Shown: one piece after another, positions 2,873 through 58,569 of the stretch | How positions within the stretch are numbered: the stretch's first letter is position 1 | How the letters are laid out: every line of letters starts with the position of its first letter | Made by a program: the position numbers and the translations under genes | The notes under the pieces: generated by a model | Told to the model about the DNA's origin: nothing | Database searches by the model: none | What the model saw: the letters and a program-made list of their open reading frames with translations, nothing else | Source of the DNA: Anthoceros angustus | Taxonomy: Eukaryota > Plantae > Anthocerotophyta | Direction: 5' to 3' | DNA length: 64,000 nt | Assembly (NCBI GenBank): GCA_010909165.1 | Contig: MU008171.1 | Span: 992,001-1,056,000 of the forward strand

Positions 2873-2905
2873 GGGTGGTAGCATGGTTTGGTGGTACACT
2901 TTAGT
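2873..2905 (+). repeat. Left TIR of the Sola-like element
   Basis: gggtggtagcatggtttggtggtacactttagt matches the reverse complement of 17578-17609. Confidence 0.8.
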
Positions 2906-3459
2906 ACCATATGGCTTGGTACACTTGGTTACTTTGAAAAGGATAGAGAGATGTGAGAGGGTGACTTTAAGTTTTCATTAAAATAATATTTCAATATATG
3001 TTAGTTTCACCTTTATATACTTTTACGTTTGCTATTATTTACTTTAACTTACTTTTACTTTTACTTGGATCTGTTTTATCCGGTGGTAAGTCAACCGCCG
3101 CTTACTTTTCGGCCTTACGCGTGGGTGCACTCTCGCTATTGCCATCGCGAGCTCGATCTTGAGTTGATCCTTCGCATACGAGGCGGCTGGATGCAATCTC
3201 GCACTTGCTCGCCCACATCCGGCCGGCGATCGCACACACTCCGCGGGCTCAAAAGTTCGCGTGCTCGAGCTCGGTTGTTGTAATCAACCCTTGTCTGCAT
3301 TGTGAGCTATGTGGGGCTTCTTATGAGCCCTCCTTCCTTCTGCGAGCGGGCTCCCCACATGCAAGATCGAGGCGGCTGGAATCAGCAGTTTGTTTGTGCG
3401 ATTTTGAAGGTAATGTGCCTTGTGTGTGGCAATCGGTGTTTTGCCACGAGGCTTGCTTT

Positions 3460-4510
3460 ACGCTCTTGTGTGCACATGTGCAGTGCTAGGCTTGTGAGGT
3501 CTTTGGGCGTGAGGTCTTGGCCTTGGAGTGGGTGCGTGCGGCTTCTCATTGTCTGTGGTGTCCTTTGAAGAACTTGAGGCTTAACGGTCTTGTGTGGACA
3601 TGTGCATGCTCTAGTGTGAGGTCTTTGGGCGTGTGAGGGTGCTCCGATGGGTGCCGAGTGCGCTCCTTTGATCATTCCTTGTGTTCAATGTCACGTGAAG
3701 GACTTGAGCCTTGCTTTACTCTTGTGTGCACATGTGCGGTGCAGGGGCGTGAGATCTTTGTGCGTGAGGTCTTGGCCTTGGAGTGGGTGCGTGCGGCTTC
3801 TCATTATCTGTGGTGTCAAGAACTTGAGCCGGCTTAACGGTCTTGTGTGGACATGTGCATGCTCTAGGGGGCGTGAGGTCTTTGGGCGTGTGAGGTGCTC
3901 CGATGCATGCCGAGGTGCGGCTCCTTTGATCATTCCGTGTGTTCAATGTCACGGTGAAGGACTTGAGCACAGTAATGCTCTTGTGTGCACATGTGCAGGA
4001 TCTGGGGCTGTGAGATGTTGTGCGCGTGAGGGTGCTGGCCTTGGAGTGGGTGCCGACGTGCGGCTTCTCCTTGTCTATGGTGTCCCTGAAGAACTTGAGC
4101 CGGCTTAACGGTCTGTTGTGGACATGTGCAGGCTCTGGGTGAGGTGCTGGGCGTGTGAGGGTGCTCTAGTGGGTGCCGAGGTGCAGCTCCTTTGATCATT
4201 CCTTGTGTGCAATGTTGTGAAGGACTTGAGCACGAATAATGCTCTTGTGTGCACATGTGCGGGTGCTAGGCTTGTGAGGTGGTGGCATTGTGATTTTGTT
4301 GGAGTGGTGCGATGTGCTTCTCCTTGTGTCTTGATCTGGAGTGAAGAACTTGAGCCGCTGCGGTCTTGTGTGCACATGTGGGTTGGGGTTGTGTGGTCTT
4401 TGGGCGTGTGAGGGTGCTGGCCTTGGAGTGGGTGCCGAGGTGCGGCTTCTCCTTGTGTGTCTTGTCTGAAGAACTTGAGCTGCTTAATGCAAATGTGTGC
4501 ACATGTGCTG
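3460..4510. repeat. Subterminal tandem array (about 125-bp subunits, about 250-bp dimer)
   Basis: cttgtgtg(c/g)acatgtgc recurs near 3470, 3595, 3725, 3848, 3985, 4118, 4248, 4370 and 4497, with shared intervening blocks (ggccttggagtgggtgc, gaagaacttgagc, ctcctttgatcattcc). Confidence 0.85.
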
Positions 4511-4675
4511 TATGGAGTGGGTCTTGAGGTGCTCGGTGTTGGAGTGACATGGCTTCCTCGATGAGGAGGAGACATTAGGCATCTCAAGGAATCAAAAGCG
4601 TGCCCTCAAAAACATGTTGAGCCGCTCACGCGTGAGTCGAGCCTTGGAGGCGGTGCCAAAGTGGGCGTTCACTTT

Positions 4676-7285
4676 GGTCTTGGCATGAAGGAGACTACAA
4701 CTTGCGGGTGGAAGGAGTGGATGTTCGCCAAAGCAAGTTGCAGCAAGGTTTGAGGGAGGCAGTGGGCGGCGGGACGTGCTTACCCTCGGTTTGGGGTGAG
4801 GCAGCAATGATGCTTATGGGTGGAAGGGATCAGATAAGCTGTCAGACAAGGAGTGGAGAAACATCGACGACTTGGTTTTCAAGATATACGGCAAGCGAGT
4901 TAGTACTGGGGGGCAGAAGATCCCTAGGTTGATGGCCATTGGCATCCTTGTTGAGAAAAAGCTGCACAGGTCTGTCAGTTGGCTGGCCTATGCACAGAAA
5001 ACTAATGAGGTAAAGGCCTCCAAGCACAAGAAATGTGAGGACATGGAGAAGGATAAGAAAGTGCACAAGGAGAAGGAGACCCCTGGATCACATGGCCCTA
5101 TGGCGAGGTCACGAGCAAGGGAAGGGCAAGAAGGCATGTTGGGGCGGTGTCCTCGGACTCGAGGACACCGTGATGAGGAGACAGTGGCCGGTGGAGAGCA
5201 AGACCCAAAGGAGGACTTGCATGCAGGGCGTGAGCAAGAATGTATTCAAGAGGAGGTTGATGTCATAGCTGCGGTGAGGAGGAAACCATCTTTGTTCGGA
5301 GCGGAGGATGTAGAACCGGAGGCAGTGCAATGTCGTGGGTTTTCCTTATAGTTTTAGATTCCCTGCGGTTTAAGATTCACCGTGAGTGCTACCCTTAGGT
5401 CATGTGCTTTGCTTAGGACCTGCAGGACTGCCTTGAGCGCTCATTTGGAAGGGTTTGTTCCACGGTTTTCGCATCCATCACGTTTAAGGTTTGAGCTTGA
5501 TTTATGTGAGCTTGCTCTTATTGATTGCATGAGGAGCAACAAGCTTGACAAGTTCTTTGCTGGTCTTGGCATGAAGGAGACTACAACTTGCGGGTGGAAG
5601 GAGTGGATGTTAAGCAAGTTGCAGCAAGGTTTGAGGGAGGCGTGGGCGGCGGGACGTGCTTACCCTCGGTTTGGGAATAGAGGCAGGGCAATGATGCTTA
5701 TGGGTGGAAGGGATCGGATAAGTCGGACAAGTGGAGAAACATCGGACTTGGTTTTCAAGATATCTGACAAGCGAGTTAGTCTTGGGGCGGAAGATCCCTA
5801 GGTTGATGGCCATTGGCATCCTTGTTGAGAAAAAGTTGCGCAGTCATGGGTTGGGGTGGCCTATGCAGAAAACTAATGAGGTAAAGGCCTCCAAGCACAA
5901 GAAATGTGAGGACATGGAGAAGGATAAGAAAGTGCACAAGGAGAAGGAGACCTGGATCACATGGCCCTATGGCGAGGTCACGAGCAAGGGAAGGGCAAGA
6001 AGGCATGTTGGGGCGGTGTCCTCGGACTCGGACCGTGATGAGGAGACAGTGGCCGGTGGAGAGCAAGACCCAAAGGAGGACTTGCATGCAGGGCGTGAGC
6101 AAGAATGTATTCAAGAGGAGGTTGATGTCATAGCTGCGGTGAGGAGGAAACCATCTTTGTTCGGAGCGGAGGATGTAGAACCGGAGGCAGTGCAATGTCG
6201 TGGGTTTTCCTTATAGTTTTAGATTCCCTGCGGTTTAAGATTCACCGTGAGTGCTACCCTTAGGTCATGTGCTTTGCTTAGGACCTGCAGGACTGCCTTG
6301 AGCGCTCATTTGGAAGGGTTTGTTCCACGGTTTTCGCATCCATCACGTTTAAGGTTTGAGCTTGATTTATGTGAGCTTGCTCTTATTGATTGCATGAGGA
6401 GCAACAAGCTTGACAAGTTCTTTGCTGGTCTTGGCATGAAGGAGACTACAACTTGCGGGTGGAAGGAGTGGATGTTAAGCAAGTTGCAGCAAGGTTTGAG
6501 GGAGGCGTGGGCGGCGGGACGTGCTTACCCTCGGTTTGGGAATAGAGGCAGGGCAATGATGCTTATGGGTGGAAGGGATCGGATAAGTCGGACAAGTGGA
6601 GAAACATCGGACTTGGTTTTCAAGATATCTGACAAGCGAGTTAGTCTTGGGGCGGAAGATCCCTAGGTTGATGGCCATTGGCATCCTTGTTGAGAAAAAG
6701 TTGCGCAGTCATGGGTTGGGTGGCCTATGCAGAAAACTAATGAGGTAAAGGCCTCCAAGCACAAGAAATGTGAGGACATGGAGAAGGATAAGAAAGTGCA
6801 CAAGGAGAAGGAGACCCCACGGATCACATGGCCCTATGAGGTCACGAGCAAGGGAAGGGCAAGAAGGCATGTTGGGGCGGTGTCCTCGGACTCGAGGACA
6901 GTGATGAGGTTAGACAGTGGCCGGTGGAGAGCAAGACCCAAATGAGGACTTGCATGCAGGAGGCGTGAGCAAGAATGTATTCAAGAGGAGGTTGATGTCA
7001 TAGCAGGTGAGGAGGAAACCATCCCGAGGCGGAGGATGTAGAACCGGAGGCAGTGCAATGTCGTGGGTTTTCCTTATAGTTTTAGATTCCCTGCGGTTTA
7101 AGATTCATGAGTGCTACCCTTAGGTCATGTGCTTTGCTTAGGACCGGACCTTGAGCCTGCTCATTTGGAAGGGTTTGTTCCACGGTTTTCGCATCCATCA
7201 CGTTTAATGTGTTTGAGCTTGATTTATGTGAGCTTGCTCTTATAGATTGCATAGAGCAACAAGCTTGACAAGTTCTTTGCTGGTT
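4676..7285 (+). repeat. Three tandem copies of an 865-886-bp unit containing a degenerate Lys/Glu-rich ORF
   Basis: ctacaacttgcgggtggaag occurs at 4695, 5581 and 6446. The ORF-track translations at 5382/6247 and 5610/6475 are identical. Confidence 0.9.
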
Positions 7286-7639
7286 TTGACTTAGCCTCGA
7301 TCTTGTAAAGTTCACTTACGTTGCTAAGCTGTCTTTGTTTGTGTGAGCTTGGTGTTTTCGTGGATTCGAGATAGACTCTTGCGGTAGCTCAATTGTGAGG
7401 ATTCTTCACGGGAGGGGAGGGGAGGGAGAGGGGCCTCATGGGCATTCCGACATCTATCTGGTGCAGTTTGGCAGGGGGGCCACTAGGCACATCAACACCT
7501 AGTGGTGTCTTGTCATGTCGTCATGTCTGCATGTAGTGTATGCTTGTCATGTCGTCGTCCGTTGTGCAGTCCGTCATGCATGGCCGGGTGGTGATACGGT
7601 GACGTCTTGGAGTGTGGCGATTTCTTGATGTCGTGTATT

Positions 7640-8160
7640 CACGCGGTGGAAGTGACATTTGTTCATCTTGTCATCATGTCACGTTACTGTAAGCATTTGT
7701 TCATCATCATCGTGTCACGTTGTGCACACTGTAGGCATCTTCATCTTGTCATCGTATCACGTTGTGCACGCATCATTCATCGTCATCATGTCACGTTGTG
7801 CACAGAGCCTCTGTTCATCGTCATCATCTCACGTTGTGCACCGTGGGCAATTGTTCATCTCATCATGTCACTTTGTGCACTTGTGGGCATTTGTTCATCA
7901 TCATGTCACGTTGTGCACACTGGGCATTTGTTCATCTTGTCATCATGTCACGTTGTGCACATGGGCATTTCTCCGCCGTCATGTTGTCATGGACATCTTT
8001 ACAATTCGATGCCATTGTTATTATGTGACATTGTGGACACATGTGCAGCTATTCATCTGGCATTCTGTCACATTTTTGGACCTGTGGGCACTTTCTCATG
8101 TTGTCTTCTTGGGTGGCATGGTGGACATGTTAGCATTTCCTCAAGTTGTCGTGTGCACAC
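7640..8160. repeat. Degenerate short tandem repeat (catcatgtcacgttgtgcac core, about 40-bp period)
   Basis: Repeated catc(a/g)tgtcacgttgtgcac and ggcatttgttcatc motifs. Confidence 0.75.
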
Positions 8161-8261
8161 TTGTTTTCGTGTGTAGGGATACGCTAGAGTTGCACACAAA
8201 GATCAAAAGCATGGCGGTGGAAGACCTCATCTCCTTGTCGAGCAAGAGACCGGTTCGGTGA

Positions 8262-9045
8262 TTGCAAGCGAGGAGACAAGCAACCTTGCAGCAGCAAAAT
8301 TGCTCTAGGGGAGCTCACAGCGCCCTTGGCGCAATCTGCTATAACAAGGAGGTGCGGTTATGTGGAGCGGTCATCAACTTCATACTCACGAGCGACCTAA
8401 TTATATGCATCGCTGCGGTAGAAGATGCACATGTTGCTCGTGTCCAGGCACAATTGCGTGCAGTGCAGGAGGCGGCGGACAATCTGAGAGCCAACAACAA
8501 AAAGCGTGACGCCCTCCAACGAACTGTTAATCTGGCGGAGGATTTACATGATGCCTTTGGCCGCATACATAGCTTGACGCTCAAGAAAGAAAGGACTCCT
8601 CAATGGATTCCAGCCCCTTCTTACACTAGCCAGAATGTAGCCCTCCAGATCACGAAGTGCTGCGTGTGCACCAGGTACTTCTGCCGCCGTATGCATGCCT
8701 TGTTTCGTGTACTGAGATCTGTTCCATGCATCTAACTGCAATTGGTTTTGTGGTGCTATGTAGGGGATTCGGATGCTATGACTTTGTTTTCCTCCCTTGT
8801 GGGCACTGTTTTCACGATGTATGCCTCTACCAACACATGCTGGTCAGGGTGACTGCCCCAATCCTGCTTGTTCTCTTCAAGTCCCGGCACAGTGGCTGCA
8901 GGCCAAGGGTTGGCCATTCACTAGTGGAGTCCAACGGATGCACAGGAGCGTGACCGAGGAGAGTGGAGAGCATTATCATGGTACTGCAAGAATTCCACAT
9001 CATGGAGCACCGTTTGGAAGAATTGTTGGGGGTGCTGCAGGATAG
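8262..9045 (+). CDS. Spliced coiled-coil plus RING-H2-like zinc finger gene inside the transposon
   Basis: Splicing a GT-AG intron at 8675-8763 (branch tctaac about 8731) gives KCCVCTRGFGCYDFVFLPCGHCFHDVCLYQH. One frameshift later comes GDCPNPAC, giving C-x2-C...C-x-H-x2-H-x2-C...C-x4-C. It is preceded by a helical segment VARVQAQLRAVQEAADNLRANNKKRDALQRTV. The start is uncertain. Confidence 0.65.
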
Positions 9046-9379
9046 TGCCCCGGTGACTCACATAAGAAGGCGGTTCATGAGTCTCACAGTTAGTAGTGCT
9101 CTAAGGTTGTTGCTTTGCATGGAAAAGCTATATCTGACCTTGTGCTAATAGCAATTCGCTTGTCCCTAGGCACATATAGTAGTGCCTGTCCTCGCTTGGC
9201 GGTCTTGAGGCGTTGATCACACCACCACGTGGGCAGCGGCCACCTATCCCAAAGCGATTCGTGCCTCATACAATGCACAACTATGTCATGGAGTCGCCAG
9301 ATCTGGTGGTCCCTGTGTCTCAAACCATTGAGTCGGTGAGCCGCTACTACGGTGCGGTGGCAGCGTGTATTTGGCCCAC

Positions 9380-12300
9380 TCATGTGGCGATCCAGATGTC
9401 ATGTTTGGGGTTGGCTCCTTTGGTTGATGCATGCCTCTCACGTGGCGACTTCTTTGTTTGGTTTTGATTCCACTCAACGACATGGGTCGATTGGTGGTGG
9501 GCCACAAGGTGGGCACCCATGTGTACCCAACAAGGCCAGCCTACAACTCGGTGTGTTGAAGATCGCAATGCAGCGGTGGAAGAGGATACCAGTGGAAGAG
9601 GATACCCGAGCGGTCAGGGGAGGATACCAGTTTTCTACGAGACTCGGTCGTGCGGTGGACACCCACCTTGTGCATGATGATGAAACTCGGGTCAAGAATG
9701 ACACACGGCTTGTGCGAACCAGCAACTTAGAACTTGTGCCGTCTGTGGAAGTGACCACGGATGCGAGAAGATGAGGTGGAGGTGCCCGGCAAGGATGGGG
9801 AGGGCGTGACCACTATGGCGGTGGCTGCGGGTATGGATGTGGCCACTTGTCTTTGGTGTTCCAATGGCCGATTCTCGCTGGTGAAGCGGCCACTATGTGT
9901 CGAACCCAGGTAAGTGGCTATTGTCATTCATAAGGATGCGGAGAAATCGCCACTTCGGCAGCACGAAGTGGTGGAGGTATCGGTGGGCGTCGATCTTTGC
10001 GTAGAAAAGGCAAGCGGGCAGACTCCGGGAACTTTGAAAGCGGAAGGGTGCCTCAAGTCCGGAGACCAGGCGTCCCAAGAAAGCTTCACAAAGTGCCATG
10101 GTGGAACAACCGGCGGTTTGGAATTTAGTCTGTCCACATGCGGAGATAACTTCATGGTGCGTTCGAGGCACGGTAATAAAGAGAAAGTTCTGGTATGTAT
10201 TGCGTTGCCGAGCCCATGGTCACATTAAAGGCGAAGATCCAGTGGGGTGGTGAGATTTTTGCAGCGGTGAAAAGGTTGTGAAAAGGTTACTACTATGAGC
10301 GGTGCCTCGACAAAAGTGCCTACCATCGGATTCGAGCCACGTGGTGACCCAATAATGCTTGAAGGCGAGGAATCGACAAAAGTTTCCAATGGTAGCTATT
10401 CCGGGGCCAATGAGAAGAACAAGAACACTCCAGCCTTGGCTCTGCTGGATATAGAACATGGTTGGATCAAGTTGTGGCGACATAGCGTAAAGGGAGGGGT
10501 CCTGCAAAATATACATGGGCTTGCTTTGTTCTTAGTCCACAGTGGTCACTTTTTGTCAAGGCTTGGACGTGTGTAGGATCTTGTGGATGGGGTATTAATG
10601 TGCAAGCATCCATAATTGGCATAGATGTGAATCCTTGCACTTTTGACAATCATGTTACTTGTGGGAGAATGCACCTGGTTTTTGTGGGTCTGTGAAGCAA
10701 TTCTCCGTTTGTAGTTCTTAGCAAGCGTTGGGAGGAAGCTACCGGTTGTAATTGCTCAATTACGAGCAAACCCGCGCGAGAAAAGAGGGCCTCGGATGGT
10801 CTCTGACAATGCCTCAGGCGATCCAGATTCGAGCTCGTGCGGACACATATGCAATTCCAATGACACAGATTAGTTTCGACACACGCCATGTAGACATTTT
10901 GTGGGACAGAACACACAACAAAAGGAGCTCTGCGAACCAGCTTTAACATGAAACCAAAGATCCAAAATATGCCACACCACCGATTTCACCGCCACCCTCG
11001 TGGCCCAAAGTCGATGTAATGTACAATGCCACAAAATAAGCATCAAGGGATGCTCTCCGCCATCCACCCATTGTCACACAACCTATCTAGTGTCGTGGAT
11101 GTGCGAGCTAGCCAGACGGAAGGAACTTGTTGCCCGACCTCGGTGGCGCCCTCAATCTATCACATCGCTGTCCTCCTCGCTTGAGTCCCCACCGCAGGCA
11201 TGCGGATCGGTGCCTTCCGTCAACCCGACCACCTCCATGATGTGCGGCGTGCAGCGGCGGTGGAAGGCTTGGCATATGGGGCCACACACGATCTCGGACC
11301 TTCTTCCGATGGCGCTTGCGTGCCTTGGCCCGTTCCATTCGATGCAAGTAGTGTGCGCCAAGGTGACTAGTGACTTTCATCGTTGACAAATGGTGATACT
11401 CACCTCCGTGAAGAGGGTGCCTGGCCAGCTTGCCTAATCCGCTTGAAGATTCCATGTCCCTCCCCACACCAACCACTCCTCCCAAGTGCGCGCTTCCATT
11501 GCATACAAGAGCGAAGTCCGCCATCTCCACAAAGGACAAAGGCGGGCTAGCTTGCGTGGTCTACGAAGTGCTTGCCGGCTTTAAATTGCCAATGTTGGAG
11601 GCCACTCGTGTGCATAAGGCCCGAAGGTGGGTGACATGATTACTGAAACATGCCCAAGTGTAAGGAAAGCAAGGCCTGGATGGCCAATCAGCGATAGATT
11701 TTGAAAATTCGACCTCGATCCTTTCGACTTGTCGAACCCGGCATAGGGGACCAAAGATTTGAGGCCAACGTGACCAAGAGTCCGACATGACAAGAGTGCA
11801 TGGAGTCCTTTGTTTGCAATGATTGAAAATGGGAAAACTAGGGCCATTTACCCGGAGATAAAGAATTTCACAGTCAAGCCGGAGTGATGCAGGAAGCAAT
11901 GTAAACACATCCACAAAGTTCTTAACGCCGCTTCATGCTTGCTATAGCCCACTACAACTTCTCGACAGCGTGTTGCTGTCTTCAGACAACACATGAACTT
12001 GAAACCACCGGGGTGGTCTTGCTTACCACCACTGGCGTCCTCTTTCGGTTTTCAAACCTATTTGTTATTGCCGTTAGAACCTTCAACATGTGGACAATCA
12101 ACCTCTTGCTGGTCGGGGTTGCAAGTCACCAGCCTCCCGAGTCATAAAGCATTGTCTCAGTTTAAGCGGTCTGACACCTGTTTGAATTTTGTCCAGGAAC
12201 TCCTTTTGCACCTTGAACTGCTCCGAAGCTAGTAACCTTCGAATGTCATGCTCCAACTTGAATTTGCACATAGCTGCTTGGTGCAGCTTATGCGTCACGA

Positions 12301-12790
12301 CACCCACCAGCTCTGGCCTCGAAGCTTGCTCTGGATCCTGCAGCACCGCTGACCAGGCCTTCGCAGCAAATTCTAACGTGCCTTCATTAGCATTCCTACA
12401 GTCCAGCAGATACCCCAACTCCCAAGTCTGGATCGGCTGCTTTGAAAGATCCAAAGGATACAAGCTTGACATTCCAACCGGAAGCGGAATCACAACATGC
12501 ACACGCCCGTGCGGTCCTTACAGAACCGCGTTATCCTCATCAAGCGTGAGCGGCGAATCGAAAAGCATCCTCCTCACATTCAACGCGTCTTGATGCAGGC
12601 GGAAGGTGAGTAGACACCCATGGCGGGCGTCTCCCTCCGAACTCCCGAAGTTTGGTTTGCCATGGACCCTCCACGCCGCCCCGGTGTGAATGAAGAGTCT
12701 CTGCACCGCCGCTAACGCCGCACTCACGGACTGTCCGTCAAAATAAGCGGTAAGAAGGATTGTGAAAGCGGCACGTCTCGGGAGTAACCT
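9380..12790 (-). pseudogene. Long decayed ORF of unknown function inside the transposon
   Basis: ORF-track segments 12518-12859, 12098-12502, 11561-11914, 11108-11539, 10220-10516, 9893-10171 and 9380-9568 all lie in one minus frame, separated by stops. The 12.8-12.1 kb part reads as globular protein. No family was recognised. Confidence 0.45.
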
Positions 12791-12801
12791 AACAAGCGGG
12801 C

Positions 12802-13228
12802 GACCCACATCCCCATCCCACATCCCCGCACCCACATCCCACATCCCGCATCCCCACATCCCACATCCACATCATCCCCATCCCACATCCCCACATCACA
12901 TCCCCATCCCCATCCCCACATCCCCATCCCCATCCCACATCCCACATCCCCATCCCACATCCCCATCCCCATCCCCATCCCCACATCCCACATCCCCATC
13001 CCACATCCCACATCACATCCCCATCATCCCCACATCCCACATCCCCATCATCCCCATCACATCCCACATCCCACATCCCACATCCCCATCCCCACATACA
13101 TCCCCATCCCCATCCCCATCCCCATCCCACATCCCACATCCCACATCCCCATCCCACATCCCCATCCCACATCCCACATCCCCATCCCACATACCCACAT
13201 ACCCACATATACCCACATACCCACATAC
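12802..13228. repeat. (CCCCAT/CCCACAT)n microsatellite, G-rich on the minus strand
   Basis: Directly visible low-complexity tract. Confidence 0.95.
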
Positions 13229-13284
13229 CCTGATTTATCAAACTTGAGCTCCCACTCCCGACGCACATCTATTAGGGTACAATA

Positions 13285-13830
13285 TACAAAGCGGCGTTAT
13301 AGCACAATTTGGGTCACAAGTCTTTAGAGCCAAAACATTTTTGAAGCATGACCTTGCAAATCTATAGTGTGACAACATAGTCTAGTAAACTCGGCACCCG
13401 AAGCAGGTGACAACATAGCAGATAAACGCGGCCCCGGGCAATGTGAAAATAGAAACCTTGGGGCACGGCGACTTGCATTAATTGTTGTCCTCCTCGCGAT
13501 GAGTGTTCATCCAATCGGGTTGTGCTCATCTCAAGACGCAGAATGAACATGATCTATCGAACGAAACATATATCGAAAAAGGCGTTATAGCACGAATTTG
13601 GGTCACAAGTCTTGAGCCAAAACATTTTGTGAAAGCAGTACTGACCTTGCAAAGCCTGCATGTGACAACACGGTCTAGTAAACTCGGCACCCGAAGCAGG
13701 TGACAACATAGCGGTCGATAACGCGGCCCAAAACAATGTGAAAATAGCATCCGGGCGGCGGCTTGCATTAATTCGTTCTCGCACGCGATGCAGTGTTGAT
13801 CGAATCGGGTTGTGCTCATCTCAAGACCAC
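13285..13830. repeat. Two diverged direct repeats of about 290 bp
   Basis: ggcgttatagcac..aatttgggtcacaagtc and gtctagtaaactcggcacccgaagcaggtgacaacatagc each occur twice (about 13290/13580 and 13380/13672). Confidence 0.85.
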
Positions 13831-13899
13831 ATTGATCATGAACCACGAACTATCCACGGTAAGAGTACTCACCTTCCTCGGTTGCTTTCATAGACATAG

Positions 13900-16800
13900 G
13901 CGTGACTTGTTCGGCTTGGTGGTTAGCCTATATAGTGGACTTCTCCATCGTGCCCATGTGGTGCCATTGTGAACTTGCATGTATCGAACAATTTGAGCGG
14001 CAAAATGCATTCCTCCGGATCCCAAGGCAAGCTATACAGACTCGGGCAAAATGCTTTTCCAACATATAGTATTGTCCACAACCACCTCCTCCCACTGGAA
14101 TTCTCTTTTACTCCAAGGGCAATCGAGACTCCGATGCGTGTGCTTGGCCTTAGTGCAAGTCAACGGTAAAAATCCAGCCCTTCATCTGCGAGTGCAAGAC
14201 AAGGAAGTTATCTCCAACTTCCAAGATATACGCCATCTCGAGACATCATCAACATCATCATCCTCACCGCTTCAATTGTTGGAAGTGCACGATCGGCAAT
14301 CATCGGTCGAGGACTTGGTCAACCGCTTGTCGTGTTTATGCGGGGCCGGCTGTCCATGAGGTGTGATTCGACCGACCTCCAAAAGCGATGAGGCACCATT
14401 TCACACGAATGGTTGCTCTCCATACACTCGCGAAACATGCAAGGCTCCGCATTCGCAATTGCGTGGGGTCATGCATGTCACAACCATACTGTGTGCATTT
14501 GCTTGGATCGTGTGGGGTCACAACCAAATTTGTTTGTTGGTTTACCTCTGTCTTTCCAATGAGCCAAAAACTTGAACGCATGATCGGCACTTGCATAAGA
14601 TGCACAGCCGAGATGTTTCTTTGCGGTACTCCACCACATCTGCAGCATTTTCCATCCCGGCGATGGGGCGACTGCACTCGCGAGCACGCTTCAAGATGGC
14701 ACTGCACCATCGTGCTCCCCTTCCCGTGCCCACTTCCAAAATAAGACCAAAGCATGTTACACCCACCTGTGATGCTAGGATACCGAGCAATGAAGTAGCT
14801 AGGGCGACACGCTTTGAATTGGCTAGCCCCATCGGCCGGCGTGTTCTCGAGGTTGAGGGAATCCGCATCCGCATCCGCCACTTTAGCAAGCAGTGTTGCA
14901 CAAATAGAGTGTCATGGACCATGTCATCGCTAATATAAAAGTGATAGTACTTCTCAATTGATGCGCGGTCCTCTGCATCAACAGGCCATTGCGCTGTAAA
15001 AACCAACACCAAAATAGTAACACTGGTTACGCGATTGCATGGATTGAATCTCATTCGGACCCCAAATGCATAGTTCGAGCAAAATCGAGCACGAAACCAC
15101 AACATCCTGTGGGAACCATTCGAGACAATGTCGAACTCTATCCCCACACACTGGATGTAATCATGAAACAGAAACTCCTTCAGCCTTACCTTCAGATACT
15201 CCACAAACACGGAAGGATGTGTTTCCCTAAACACTAGTTTGATCCTTTTCTTGTCGTTGCCATCAGCATCCTTTCCGACTACCTGATATTGAAAACAGCG
15301 CCACTTAAGAACAGCATTTGCCTGAATATCCAAACATGTCTCTGAAGGGCAGAAGGGAAGTGTGTTGACACCACACCTGTCACATGTTCCTAGCAAGCAT
15401 GCCAGGGAATGCCAGGCAGCATCCTCACCCTTTGCACAAAGAACACGCTCACATAGTGTCCTGACTGAAGCCAAACAAGTGGAGGCAGCGTTACAATGAA
15501 GCTCTTCTGAGCCAAAAGGATGAGCACACACCAGACAGGAACAATGACACTGGCCACGGGGGTGAACCCTGGAGACTGTGCCCCGGAGGTTATTGAAGGC
15601 ATCTTTAAGGAATGCCATTTCCACATGGTAATGCAAGCGGTGATTGCGCTCTTGCAAGCTCTTAACAAAGAACGGCTTCAACTTCTCGAATGACCGTTGC
15701 CCAACTTGTATTTCCGGGTGTTCTTGACAGAAGCGAAGGTAGAACTCCGTCTGCACATGTCACAGAAGAACACACCAATCAGCCTAAGAAACCTTGCTGG
15801 TAAAAGCAACACCAAACCCACAATGGAGGCCACATGGAGTCGCAGATCATATGTGAGCATAGGACATTGGGGTCAAACATGCAAGCTTGGGTCCCAGCTG
15901 ACGTAACCAGCACAAACATGTAACACACTCGGCCCAAATTTGTCTGTTTGGCGATAGCAGTCACCACTTAGTTGCCCAATAGGAAGACACCCTACGGTTG
16001 TATGAGGAAGGAAACACAAGCGGGTTAGAAGGACCCCAAGACACCTTCGGATCGGCAACAACCTAGACACAAATCTGAAACCTAGCAAGTCGACAATTCC
16101 ACATACATGACATGTCCGAAAGTGCGTGATATGTTTGATGAACGTTTTGCTATTCGCAACCGCTTGGTATCTTTTGTGTTGGATGAAGGACGGAAGTCGA
16201 TTCCCAAAAGTGGACGATGGTGGCCTTAACATGTGGCGAAAGGATGTCGATCTTGATCTCCTTCCATCACCCAACCAGATCTCACGAGGCATGCCCTCCC
16301 CTTGTGCTTAGGGCTCGATGGATCGCCTCCTGCGACTCCAATGTGGTGGGAAAGCGTAGCAACAAGGTGATTGTCTTGGAGATCTTGAGATAAAATGACG
16401 TTGAGCAGGTGTTCCTTGCTCAAAATGGTCTCCAACTTGAACGCCTTCAAGTTTGTGCAAGCCTCACGCACATTCTTCAACAACAATGCTCCTAGTTGGA
16501 TCTCTTTTGCATCCTTTGTAGCCCCTGGCCTATACAACTTGAGAAGTGGTAGGTGACTAAACACCTCCAAGATGTCTCTCGACTTTCTGCGTGTATGCGG
16601 TAAGGCATAAAAGCGATTGGCTAGTGTACGAGCCACTTCTTGTTTGACGCAGCATTCCCTAATACAATTGGCTGCAAGAGCCACGCCGCTCTCTATGCTT
16701 CACGGGCTGTTGATGTTTTGACGCCTCTCCTTCAACTCTCCCGGAAGGAGCATCCTCCCTACTCTCCTTGGCTGGAGGCGTGACTCCTCGTAACATCGCC

Positions 16801-16950
16801 TCCTCCACCTCAGATGATGTATCCTACCTTCTTCTTCCCACACTGGACACCACTTCACGTGAAGCACCTTGGTATTAGTGCTTCCACGCCGTTCGGCGGC
16901 GTTTGGCTGCGCCCATCGACTCCGTTGTTGGGAAGGTGACCGAGCCATAG
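13900..16950 (-). pseudogene. DDD/E transposase with Sola-type motif layout, frameshifted
   Basis: Across frameshifts it reads QVGQRSFEKLKPFFV, a Cys-rich block (CHCSCLVC, CERVLC, CLLGTCDRCG), DFA(E)NYAF near 15075, ISDDMVHD, DGASQFK near 14820, WSYFGSGHGKG(E)HDGA near 14710, and a C-terminal LEVGDNFLV domain. Confidence 0.75.
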
Positions 16951-17577
16951 CACCGTCCCAAAACAGCCAAGGGTTTGCGACACCACCTCCAACGCCACGG
17001 CACTATCCACCGTGTTGAAGCGGCACACCGCCCCGCACTATCCACCAACCCGGTAGCCGCGGACCTGCAACTTAGCGCCGTCCGAACTGATCCGCTCCTT
17101 CCACCACGTCCTCCACATGTAGCCACGGAGCTTGTCACGATTACGGCATAGCCAGAGTTCAAGTTTGAGCTCCGGAGCTTGTCACGACACCTAGCCTAGA
17201 GTTCAAGATGAGCTCTCGGTACCTAGGTCATTTACCCGGCTAAAGCGGTATGCACGTACTCGATCCCTTTGCACCACAGCAAATGATATTCTATGTTGAT
17301 TATTAAACTCGGAGCATTTTGGTAGCGTTGGCGGGCCGTTCTGGGCCACGAGTTCGTGAAATGAAGCGGCAAAAGGCCGACTATGTGGGGACATTGTCCT
17401 TAAAACTGAATTTTTAAAGCATATTTTAATATACCATTCTTTATTAAATTTTAATCCTAGATAAAAATAGACATGACTATAACATGTAAAAAAATCAGAT
17501 AAATTGGAAAAGAAATGAATTTTTCATAATTGTAAACATTGCGTGAGGACAAATTAAGAGCGTTTCAACCGTTTCTA

Positions 17578-17609
17578 ACTAAAGTGAGCACCCAACCATG
17601 CTTATACCC
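17578..17609 (-). repeat. Right TIR of the Sola-like element
   Basis: Reverse complement reads gggtataagcatggttgggtgctcactttagt and is followed by the ATGC duplication. Confidence 0.8.
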
Positions 17610-17613
17610 ATGC

Positions 17614-20110
17614 ACATGTACCTAACGCTACTAGGACCAAGCTCGACGATCGGGCCAGCAAACACATCTTTATTGGCTTCACCAACGGCGTGAAGGGGTT
17701 CAAAATTATGCACCCGCAGACTCACAAGGTCACACATTCACGAGATGTCACCTTCCGAAGATATGCGGTCTCGGTGCAGTGGGAGCATCCAACTGAATGA
17801 AAGTCAATGTCGACGAGGACATCTCCATGGGCACGGCTCCCCCACACAGCCCACAACAGCCATCGAGCACAAAATGTTCCACAGCCTGACGCCCAGAGTT
17901 CCCAATCTTCCTCACCAACCTGTACCTGCAGAATCTTTCACCTTCGGCGATTTTGATGAGGAGGAGCTCGCCTCCTCACTCAGCGATGCAAAGGCGCCTG
18001 GGCCCAGCCGCCGCCCCACTGCAGGAGGAGACAGCAGCGAGGAGGACGACCCCCTCGGCATTGCAAGCAGCCCGGAGGACGCCAGCCACGCTGCAGACCT
18101 GGCTGCCCGACGCAGCACACACAACACACGAGGTGCGCGAGGGCGCCGCAGCCTCAAGCGCCCGACAGCAGAACATCAGCGCCTACTGCAGTTCGCAGGG
18201 CGGCCATCAAGATCTCGCCACACTCAAGACATCATCATCCGGGACGGCGCTTCCTCGCGCCTCTTGCAGAAGAATAAGACAACCAAGACCCGTCCACATC
18301 CTCACCGGCCATTTCCAGCACATACACCTCGGCCTTCATCCTCGCAGACGTGAGATGGATGATCTTCCCGCCTCAAGGCGAGGTATTCCGTGCTCGCAAC
18401 GGCGCCAATTTGCCACACAACTTACGGGATGAGGATATGGCTATACATGCGGATGAGGATGTGACTACACATGCGGATGGCAACATCACAGGGCCCGGCA
18501 GGCGATCACAGCGTACAAGTGCAGGTACCATACGAAGGTATTCTCCATCTAATTGGAGGGACCCTAAAATGAATTTAGCTTATTGCCTATCTACGGCTAT
18601 TGATCAATTTGTTCCTGCTAATTATCGTGAGGCTATTACATGTCCCGAAAGGGAAAATTGGAAAATTGCTATTAAATCAGAACTAGACTCACTCAAGACT
18701 AACAAAACTTGGACTCTTACCACATTACCCCCAGACAGAAAATTAGTGGGCTCAAAATGGACATTTAAAATCAAGCTAAATGCTGACGGCAGCATAGAGA
18801 GGTATAAGGCTAGCTTAGTTGCTAAGGGCTATTCTCAGCTTCATGGGTTTGATTATGATGAAACTTTCAGCCCGGTACTCAAGATTACCTCACTAAGGAC
18901 CCTCATAGCATTAGCCTCTCACCATGATTATGAGCTAATGCAACTTGATATTAAAACGGCTTTCTTGTACGGCGACCTACAACACACAATATATATGATA
19001 ATACCCGAGGGAATTAAGGTCAACCGACGATTATATAATGCATGCAAATTATTGAAAGCACTTTATGGACTTAAATAGAGTGCTATGGAATGGTACTCTA
19101 AGCTGGATGAAACCCTAGAGGCATTAGGGTTTACCAAACTAGACTCTGACAGCAACATCTATATAAGAAGATCAGATGGTTGCTTTATATTACTTTGGTC
19201 AGATATGTAGATGATATTGTTTTGATGTCTAACTCTAAGCCCATGCTAGAAGAAACCAGTTAATGCTTTCCAAGCGTTTTGCCATGACTACTTGCAGGAC
19301 TTATCTTATTGTTTAGGCATTGAGATAGTTAGACATAGAGAGTCTAGAAGTATATTCATACACCAATCAAGTATATTCAAGAAGTTTTAACTAAGTACAA
19401 GATGCAAGACTCTAAGCCCATATCGACACCTATGGAAGTTAATCTTAAGCTTATTAAGGCGGATCTAGACTCGGCTCGGATCCGGATATGAACGAGGTAC
19501 CCTACTCTTGAGCAGTCGGGAGCCTCATGTATTTAATGGTGCACGCACGGATCTTGCTTTTCGTGGGAGCACTCTCCCGCTTCTATCTTCTCCGGCAGTG
19601 AGCACCGGAAGGCCATCAAGAGGATTTTCCGGTATCTCGATCCACATCGACAGGACTCCTTTATCAATCACCCACTAAGCGAGGTGACCCTCTCCAGCTC
19701 GTGGGATATAGTGACCCGGGCCGGAGACAAGGCTGAAGAGTACAATGCCACGATACCGCTGAGGGATACCTAGATGAACAAAGTGTTATTGCCTTAAGCT
19801 CCATCAATCGAATATTGTTCCTTAACACATGCTTGCAAGGAGGGTTATGGCAACTCCTTGCATTCTAACTTAGGAGAAACCCAGATTTGCCAAGACCTCT
19901 CTATTGTGACAATCAAGGCGCTATATCGCACATACAGCTCCAAGTACACCAAGCACATCAAGTGCAATTTCATTTTATTCGAAAGGTGGTCAAGGATGGT
20001 AAATTTGAAGTTTTATATTGGCCGACGGAGCAGATGACGGCCGACATCCCGACCAAGGCACTCAGCTCAGCAAGCACCTGTGCATCTATGGGTTTGAGAA
20101 AATTATCAGA
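17614..20110 (+). pseudogene. copia-A 3' half: integrase tail, reverse transcriptase, RNase H
   Basis: HVPNATRTKLDDRASKHIFIGF..SRDVTF, then NWKIAIKSELDSL, KWTFKIKLNADGSIERYKASLVAKGYSQ, LLKALYGLK, YVDDI (about 19205) and YCDNQGAI. Confidence 0.9.
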
Positions 20111-58052: not shown

Positions 58053-58569
58053 TTCATAAATATATTAATTTATCAATTATAATATATTCAAAAAATATAT
58101 CATAAATCTATTTAATGAATTTGAATAATTAATACATTTAATAAAACTAACTATAATTACCTGCATTTTGCGGAGTCTGGAGAAATGGAGAGGATGTGTC
58201 CTAATTCGGATTATGCTTGGCCCTGCTCTGAAAGTACTAAAAGTTTGGGAAGCTTTCCTAGGGCTGCTCATTCTGGGAATACTCCTTCTATGAGGCAGAC
58301 TACCACTCAGTTGAGCTAATTGTCCCTTGAGTGCCATTCTCAAAGACGTGACAAATAAACTGCGTCGGCATTTTGCCTGTCCATGCACATTTCACGATGG
58401 CTGCGTGCTTGCATATTCCCTCATTCAAAATCATGCTAGGCAGTAGCTGTTACTGTGGGATGCATCAGAGAAGACTCCTGAAAACAAGGGCGTGGTGAGC
58501 CTGAAAGGATGCAGCTTCTAGTATTCATCGTAGGTGCACTGTACAGTTGAAAAGGCCGGCAGAAGTTGC

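Follow-up and report, generated by a model that had tools for sequence, protein, structure and literature searches.

What is the 14.7-kb insertion that interrupts a Ty1/copia integrase gene in the genome of Anthoceros angustus, and does it carry genes of its own besides a transposase? The insertion lies in a 64-kb stretch of contig MU008171.1, which was analysed at its full length of 64,000 nucleotides and is hereafter called the window, and it occupies positions 2873-17609 as one bounded element of 14,737 bp. It is very probably a DNA transposon of the Sola2 superfamily, in an old copy that is no longer active; it inserted into the copia integrase gene and duplicated four target bases, ATGC. 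From comparison with related loci we concluded, in addition, that a RING-H2 gene probably belongs to the regular make-up of this Sola2 clade and was not captured by the copy in the window alone. The insertion site and the termini of the element comprise the following features, given as positions in the window.

2388-2872, resuming at 17614-17797, plus strand: host copia integrase, outside the element, the left part running to position 18 of the SH3-like profile (Pfam).
2869-2872: left copy of a 4-bp target site duplication (TSD), ATGC, identical to the four bases at 17610-17613.
2873-2893, plus strand: left terminal inverted repeat (TIR), GGGTGGTAGCATGGTTTGGTG, located by an inverted-repeat finder and a degenerate TIR pattern; the motif also stands at the ends of related elements.
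17589-17609, minus strand: right TIR, reading inward GGGTATAAGCATGGTTGGGTG, located by the same finder and pattern.
17610-17613: right copy of the TSD, ATGC, identical to the four bases at 2869-2872.

The host gene provided the sharpest test of the ends of the insertion. Its left flank (2388-2872) matches the Pfam family rve together with profile positions 1-18 of PF25597 (SH3_retrovirus), which models the SH3-like domain found in polymerases of retroviruses and copia elements, and its right flank (17612-17797) matches positions 19-67 of the same profile (expect value (E) 6.7e-17), so that the integrase is split exactly between profile positions 18 and 19. Since the two flanks hold adjoining parts of the profile, excision of 2873-17613, which is the element plus one ATGC, rejoins the integrase at the codon. 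A restored copia integrase frame had been claimed by a sequence-only reading of this DNA, and the profile match bears this out. The host Ty1/copia element spans 830-2872 and 17614-19078 and contains gag, Pol_BBD, rve, SH3-like and RVT_2 domains; relative to the insertion, gag and Pol_BBD lie upstream and RVT_2 lies downstream (Pfam). The TIR arms are 21 nt long, imperfect and 81% complementary, as measured by the inverted-repeat finder. At the left junction the DNA reads GTGTATGC followed directly by GGGTGGTAGCATGG, and at the right junction CATGCTTATACCC followed directly by ATGCACATG. The degenerate terminus pattern occurs twice in the 64-kb window, at the two TIR arms only, against a chance expectation of 0.04, and self-comparison found no further copy of any part of the element in the rest of the window. 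TIRs, TSD and host-frame restoration agree on a single TIR-bounded DNA transposon with a 4-bp ATGC duplication, as the sequence-only reading had proposed. It had also taken the GGG...CCC ends as a sign of Sola; such ends are not diagnostic, since the termini of Sola elements are described as highly variable (PMC10741241). According to the same review, most Sola elements are 2-9 kb long, some exceed 15 kb, and a 4-bp TSD is the rule.

The gene next to the right TIR was identified from its relatives and from motifs that were read frame by frame.

About 13900-16700 (outer limits approximate), minus strand: frameshifted gene of a probable Sola2-type transposase, identified by HMMER relatives, tblastn with relatives, frame reading and motif match to Sola2-1_HM.
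15089-15078, minus strand: LDFA, from frame reading of the window, as are the motifs below.
15078-15064, minus strand: SNYAF.
Within 14946-14890, minus strand: ISDDMVHD.
14833-14813, minus strand: DGASQFK.
14731-14717, minus strand: GHGKG.
14717-14706, minus strand: EHDG.
14595-14578, minus strand: CKCRSC.

The longest stop-free stretch is the transposase core at 14545-15759 on the minus strand. No Pfam family matched this core, and its long relatives are likewise without a Pfam domain. However, an HMMER search of 1.84 billion representative proteins returned 478 relatives at E<=1e-3, with a best E of 2.8e-48. Most of these are fragments. Those with a named source are proteins of a liverwort (Calypogeia fissa CAM6085314, 747 amino acids (aa)), a fern (Adiantum nelumboides) and a mussel (Mytilus galloprovincialis). 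When aligned, the family displays the motifs DFSENY, EIQSxHW, FYISDDxxHDxxFVQHC, DGCxxQ[FY]K and SH[GA]KGxxD, and the window DNA encodes LDFA/SNYAF, NEIQSMQ, YHFYISDDMVHD, DGASQFK and GHGKG/EHDG. The motifs that had been picked out earlier (DFAxNY, DGASQFK and HGKGxHDG) are therefore all present in the DNA, although they are split over different frames. The printed row for Sola2-1_HM reads GDFAENYTF, EIQSYHW, FISDDITHD, TDGCAGQYKN and ATSHG (Majorek et al. 2014, supplement file 5). Compared by eye at the motif level, the family motifs equal this row, whereas the rows for Sola1-1_AP and Sola3-1_HM in the same file read quite differently. The window motifs carry the Sola2 core signature (DFAENY, ISDDxxHD, DGCxxQ[YF]K and SHG(KG..D)), and nothing close to YSDNCGGQNRN...ERGHTQS of Sola1 or KSDNASSYHG...EPCRGKD of Sola3 was found in the window transposase or its relatives. 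Because of this motif match, together with the 4-bp TSD that is the rule in Sola and Sola2, we filed the element under Sola2. The Sola-type transposase of the sequence-only reading is upheld, and by motifs and TSD its family appears to be Sola2, which is narrower than Sola-like.

A transposase of another superfamily with 4-bp TSDs (Sola1, Sola3 or Kolobok), or of an unnamed sister group, would fit with there being no Pfam model for this protein and no tree that includes Repbase references. Against such an origin, the Sola1-1_AP and Sola3-1_HM rows are without DFAENY, ISDDxxHD and DGCxxQYK, all of which are present in Sola2-1_HM. Kolobok elements make TTAA duplications, in contrast to the ATGC seen here. 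We regard an origin outside Sola2 as extremely improbable.

The Sola2 copy in the window is no longer intact. In a three-frame reading, the three catalytic Asp motifs lie in three different reading frames; the frame changes again near NEIQSMQ and after EHDG, and several times between 15100 and 14600. The uninterrupted transposase frame of an autonomous element is absent, and with its catalytic motifs in three frames the copy cannot make transposase as assembled. Either the copy is no longer functional or the assembly contains many indels. Both the transposase gene and the RING-H2 gene carry many frameshifts and the TIRs are 81% alike; the copy has decayed since insertion. The host copia integrase itself also looks frameshifted, which means that host and guest are both old or that the assembly is prone to indels.

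The second gene lies toward the left TIR, where two features were recognised.

8412-8558, plus strand: stretch resembling a coiled coil, immediately before the RING core, read from translations with no coiled-coil predictor.
8750-8913, plus strand: degenerate RING-H2 exon, LC-RGF..LPCGHCFHDVC then CPNPAC..QW..GW, in two frames, recognised with the relatives' RING profile.

A RING gene had been proposed from the sequence, and its RING-H2 exon is supported by the profile of its relatives, although the exon is degenerate and spread over two frames. Among 2823 six-frame pieces of the window, the RING-exon profile from related loci ranked the piece 8630-8950 on the plus strand first (E 0.0064), with the alignment VVLCRGFGCYDFVFLPCGHCFHDVCLYQHM. 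The RING-H2 core CGHCFHDVC lies at 8798-8824 on the plus strand. It is followed collinearly, in the next frame, by the tail CPNPAC...QWLQAKGW at 8854-8913, which alone is not significant and which may be compared with CADPHC...EWFKSFGF in a related locus (L015). Pfam zf-RING_2 matched the window RING weakly (E 0.051). Seven of the eight zinc ligand positions are readable across the two frames, the first Cys being lost. CCVC at 8658 was considered as the first ligand pair and was rejected, as its spacing is too long. Relative to the transposase core, the exon lies about 6.9 kb downstream; it is on the plus strand and convergent with the transposase, and the left TIR stands on the upstream side of the RING gene. 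The second-best match to the RING profile in the window (58315-58443, plus strand, E 0.023) is far from the element and has no transposase match nearby.

The evidence for a conserved partner gene comes from related loci. Scanning metagenome contigs with a four-sequence transposase alignment yielded 80 eukaryotic-looking loci, many of them on contigs of 20-167 kb. RING exons were sought in these loci by scanning for a C-x-H-x2-H-x2-C core, followed by tblastn and profile searches. A RING exon was found in 16 of the 80 loci, which correspond to about 10 distinct elements after re-assembled duplicates were merged. It lies 3-10 kb beyond the transposase match and on the opposite strand in 7 of the roughly 10 elements, or 8 if a weak match in L078 is included (E 0.0079). 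The exon ends in a family-specific tail, C-x4-C......EW...G, that is usually the end of the protein, and it is preceded, in translations of the related loci as in the window, by a coiled-coil-looking stretch. In L015 the exon matches Pfam zf-RING_2 over positions 3-43 of 44 (E 5.7e-5, below the gathering score). A further conserved block, about 100 aa long and reading EEIHKYFGPIQNKNGY...LIAKVEGLWMVVHQKP...NWAMYVEWTN, precedes the RING exon on the same strand and was located in four loci.

L007:17996-18292: conserved block upstream of the RING exon.
L045:18749-19255: the same block.
L070:19288-19545: the same block.
L025:4745-5026: the same block.

This block matched no Pfam family. A word search with the L007 block returned only short unnamed metagenome proteins, with no usable protein atlas match, and an AlphaFold2 model of the RING gene's middle block (predicted local distance difference test score (pLDDT) 57) was too poor for a fold search. 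In L070, L073, L077 and L025 the TIR motif GGGTnnnnGCAnGnTnnGGTG adjoins the RING gene at its 5' end, and in L003 it stands on the upstream side of the transposase, a layout that matches the window. A search of L070 and L077 for the other end of each element and its TSD gave nothing convincing. The bases just outside the TIR at L070:20138-20162, and likewise at L073:13149-13173, are ATGC, as in the window TSD, which could be chance or a target preference; in other relatives they are AATG, TTTT and CAAG. In L025 (2063-6170) a family TIR at 4301-4321 stands between the transposase match and a RING gene on the same strand. This suggests two adjacent or nested family copies, and two adjacent copies account for one tandem layout.

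In a maximum-likelihood tree of the relatives found in this analysis, the window transposase has a long branch and groups, in a clade with support 96/93, with the liverwort protein and every RING-bearing locus. This clade is separate from the animal-type sequences, and the RING-bearing loci are spread over several of its subclades. Rows of the tree without a RING are uninformative because they are mostly short contigs.

These observations bear on whether the window element is a patchwork, that is, a small Sola2 element with later insertions, in which the RING exon would be a captured piece of a host gene specific to this copy. Capture of gene fragments is common in plant DNA transposons, and RING-H2 genes are abundant in plants. 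On the other hand, the RING exon and its family tail (C-x4-C...EW...G) recur beside transposases that are only 30-40% identical, in the same place, in the same orientation and adjoining the TIR motif. Nor is any part of the element repeated elsewhere in the window. We also found no long terminal repeat (LTR) or TIR pairs inside 8-14 kb, and 30 interior stop-free pieces contained no Pfam domain of transposon or other kind beyond the weak RING match, so that no nested insertion is seen. These results support the view of the element as a single unit rather than as separate insertions with their own termini, and we judge a patchwork origin highly improbable. As for the accessory reading frames, co-occurrence with related transposases was seen in part: the RING exon recurs in the 16 loci, and the remaining interior pieces are unmatched there by tblastn at E<1e-3. 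The related loci, which lie outside the A. angustus genome, thus independently support a conserved RING-H2 partner in this Sola2 clade.

Several points weigh against the interpretation of the locus as a decayed two-gene Sola2 element. The Sola2 call is a motif comparison with one printed row, not a phylogeny with Repbase Sola1, Sola2 and Sola3. The 4-bp TSD is known from the window copy only, no related locus having spanned both ends, and this copy is the sole one from the A. angustus genome that was examined. One frame break falls at a run of G, at the join of HGKG and EHDG, and some of the frameshifts could be assembly errors and not decay. Evidence for the window RING is modest, with a profile E of 0.0064, one ligand lost and two frames.

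Taken as a decayed Sola2 element, the window copy would descend from a family with the layout TIR, inward-reading RING-H2 gene, non-conserved spacer, convergent DDD transposase and TIR. By analogy with what is known of the superfamily and of DDE and DDD transposases, the transposase would bind the GGGT...GGTG termini, excise the element and paste it with staggered 4-bp cuts. The RING-H2 protein, with a coiled coil and a ubiquitin-ligase-type zinc finger, may be a second element-encoded factor; our best guess, purely conjectural, is a helper that would attach ubiquitin as a mark to the transposition complex or to some protein of the host. Later decay would have brought frameshifts in both genes, divergence of the TIRs and growth of tandem arrays. 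More speculatively, a bryophyte-centred land-plant clade of Sola2 may have kept the convergent coiled-coil RING-H2 partner through deep divergence, with transposases 30-40% identical, as a functioning ubiquitin ligase that works on behalf of the transposon; it might, for instance, eliminate a host factor for silencing or repair, or control the transposase. Such an accessory function has not been described so far, and we put this idea forward as a tentative one that is rather less likely to be right than wrong.

The Sola2 superfamily was reportedly described by Bao, Jurka and Kapitonov in 2009, with the reference element Sola2-1_HM from Hydra. Like its known members, the family studied here has a DDD-type core, the signature motifs, a 4-bp TSD, short imperfect TIRs and a size within the reported range. 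It differs in its land-plant host, the literature naming Sola1 for Physcomitrella, in its convergent RING-H2 gene, and in that the window copy is broken. Sola2 elements of Dictyostelium and Polysphondylium have TIRs of 12-21 bp, 4-bp TSDs and a transposase of 888 aa (PMC3627910); the TSDs of these amoebozoan families are AT-rich, in contrast to ATGC here. Sola is listed among plant DNA transposons and has been reported from the moss Physcomitrella (Sola1), being reportedly absent or rare in flowering plants. With Sola known in non-seed plants and sizes above 15 kb on record (PMC10741241), the earlier view of the element as unusual in a plant and of an undescribed lineage was overstated. The superfamily is a known one, and the RING-H2 partner possibly marks an undescribed two-gene variant of it.

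Second genes in such elements have precedents. In Amoebozoa, chimeric Sola2-Fanzor elements carry a TnpB-like Fanzor1 nuclease as the second gene of a Sola2 element (Bao and Jurka 2013, PMC3627910). As in the family studied here, a non-transposase gene lies between the same TIRs, but the passenger there is a nuclease and here a coiled-coil RING-H2 protein; no TnpB or OrfB zinc-ribbon domain was detected in any Pfam-scanned piece of the window, and no ParB or DNA-methyltransferase domain either. PIF/Harbinger (ORF1 plus transposase) and CACTA (TnpA plus TnpD) are two-gene plant DNA transposons, whose partner proteins bind DNA and are needed for transposition. The present family resembles them in having a second protein beside the transposase that is kept across diverged members; a RING-H2 partner is not known among theirs. 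A full-text literature search that combined Sola2 with RING returned no relevant paper. By itself the locus is ordinary, being another dead transposon nested in a retrotransposon, yet the Sola2 call is useful for a family that is without a Pfam model and easily mis-annotated. Should the RING partner prove to be a functional E3 ligase, transposons would be seen to encode a helper of a new type, which would provide a testable lead on how DNA transposons contend with host control in non-seed plants.

The rest of the interior is occupied by tandem arrays and a spacer. Arrays were delimited by self-comparison.

3448-4511: tandem array with a unit of about 128/255 bp.
4675-7288: array of three tandem copies of a unit of about 870 bp, which are 91-95% alike.
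4920-5006, plus strand: within unit 1 of the 870-bp array, a weak match to the exon upstream of the RING exon in L015/L076 (tblastn E 0.002, 244 queries).
7656-8099: tandem array with a unit of 38 bp.
9050-12800: spacer between the two convergent genes, in which no gene was recognised by Pfam, word search, tblastn or repeat-pair search.
12804-13230: microsatellite-like array with a unit of 7/13 bp (CCCACAT).
13282-13850: two tandem units of 288 bp, 82% alike.
17126-17215: two subterminal tandem units of 47 bp.

The sequence-only reading had described a giant element with four repeat arrays and multiple accessory genes. Repeat arrays are indeed present, but they number six; together they cover 5208 of the 14,737 bp (35%), and they account for the giant size. 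If the element were a multi-gene cargo transposon of undescribed lineage, not only its RING gene but also the long unknown gene and the triplicated gene would have to be real. Many stop-free stretches longer than 100 aa on both strands speak for this, as does one of 139 aa at 12101-12517 on the minus strand, which appeared protein-like in a language-model recognition measure (2729). However, the 9.05-12.8 kb region is about equally open on both strands, as expected at 50% GC. Apart from the transposase, no interior piece matched any of the 80 related loci by tblastn at E<1e-3, the Pfam scan of the 30 interior pieces is equally bare, and word searches with 8262-8732 (plus strand) and 12101-12517 (minus strand) found no relatives. 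The latter also had no Pfam family, no related-locus match and no usable protein atlas match. The long unknown reading frame at 9-12.8 kb is thus left with no homologue, domain or conservation in related loci, and an Rfam scan of the element gave no match. The triplicated reading frame proved to be the 870-bp tandem unit. It includes identical 139-aa open reading frames at 5382-5801 and 6247-6666, which owe their identity to duplication of the unit, and no reading frame of this array matched Pfam. Outside support extends to the RING gene only, and we consider a multi-gene cargo element very unlikely. Inflation by tandem repeats, we caution, can mimic a giant multi-gene element.

Profiles of the middle block of the RING gene from which L015 was left out matched nothing in the 870-bp unit of the window. 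A profile that includes L015 matches 4920-5006 (E 5.5e-5), which is suggestive only, and this segment may be a remnant of the middle part of the RING gene.

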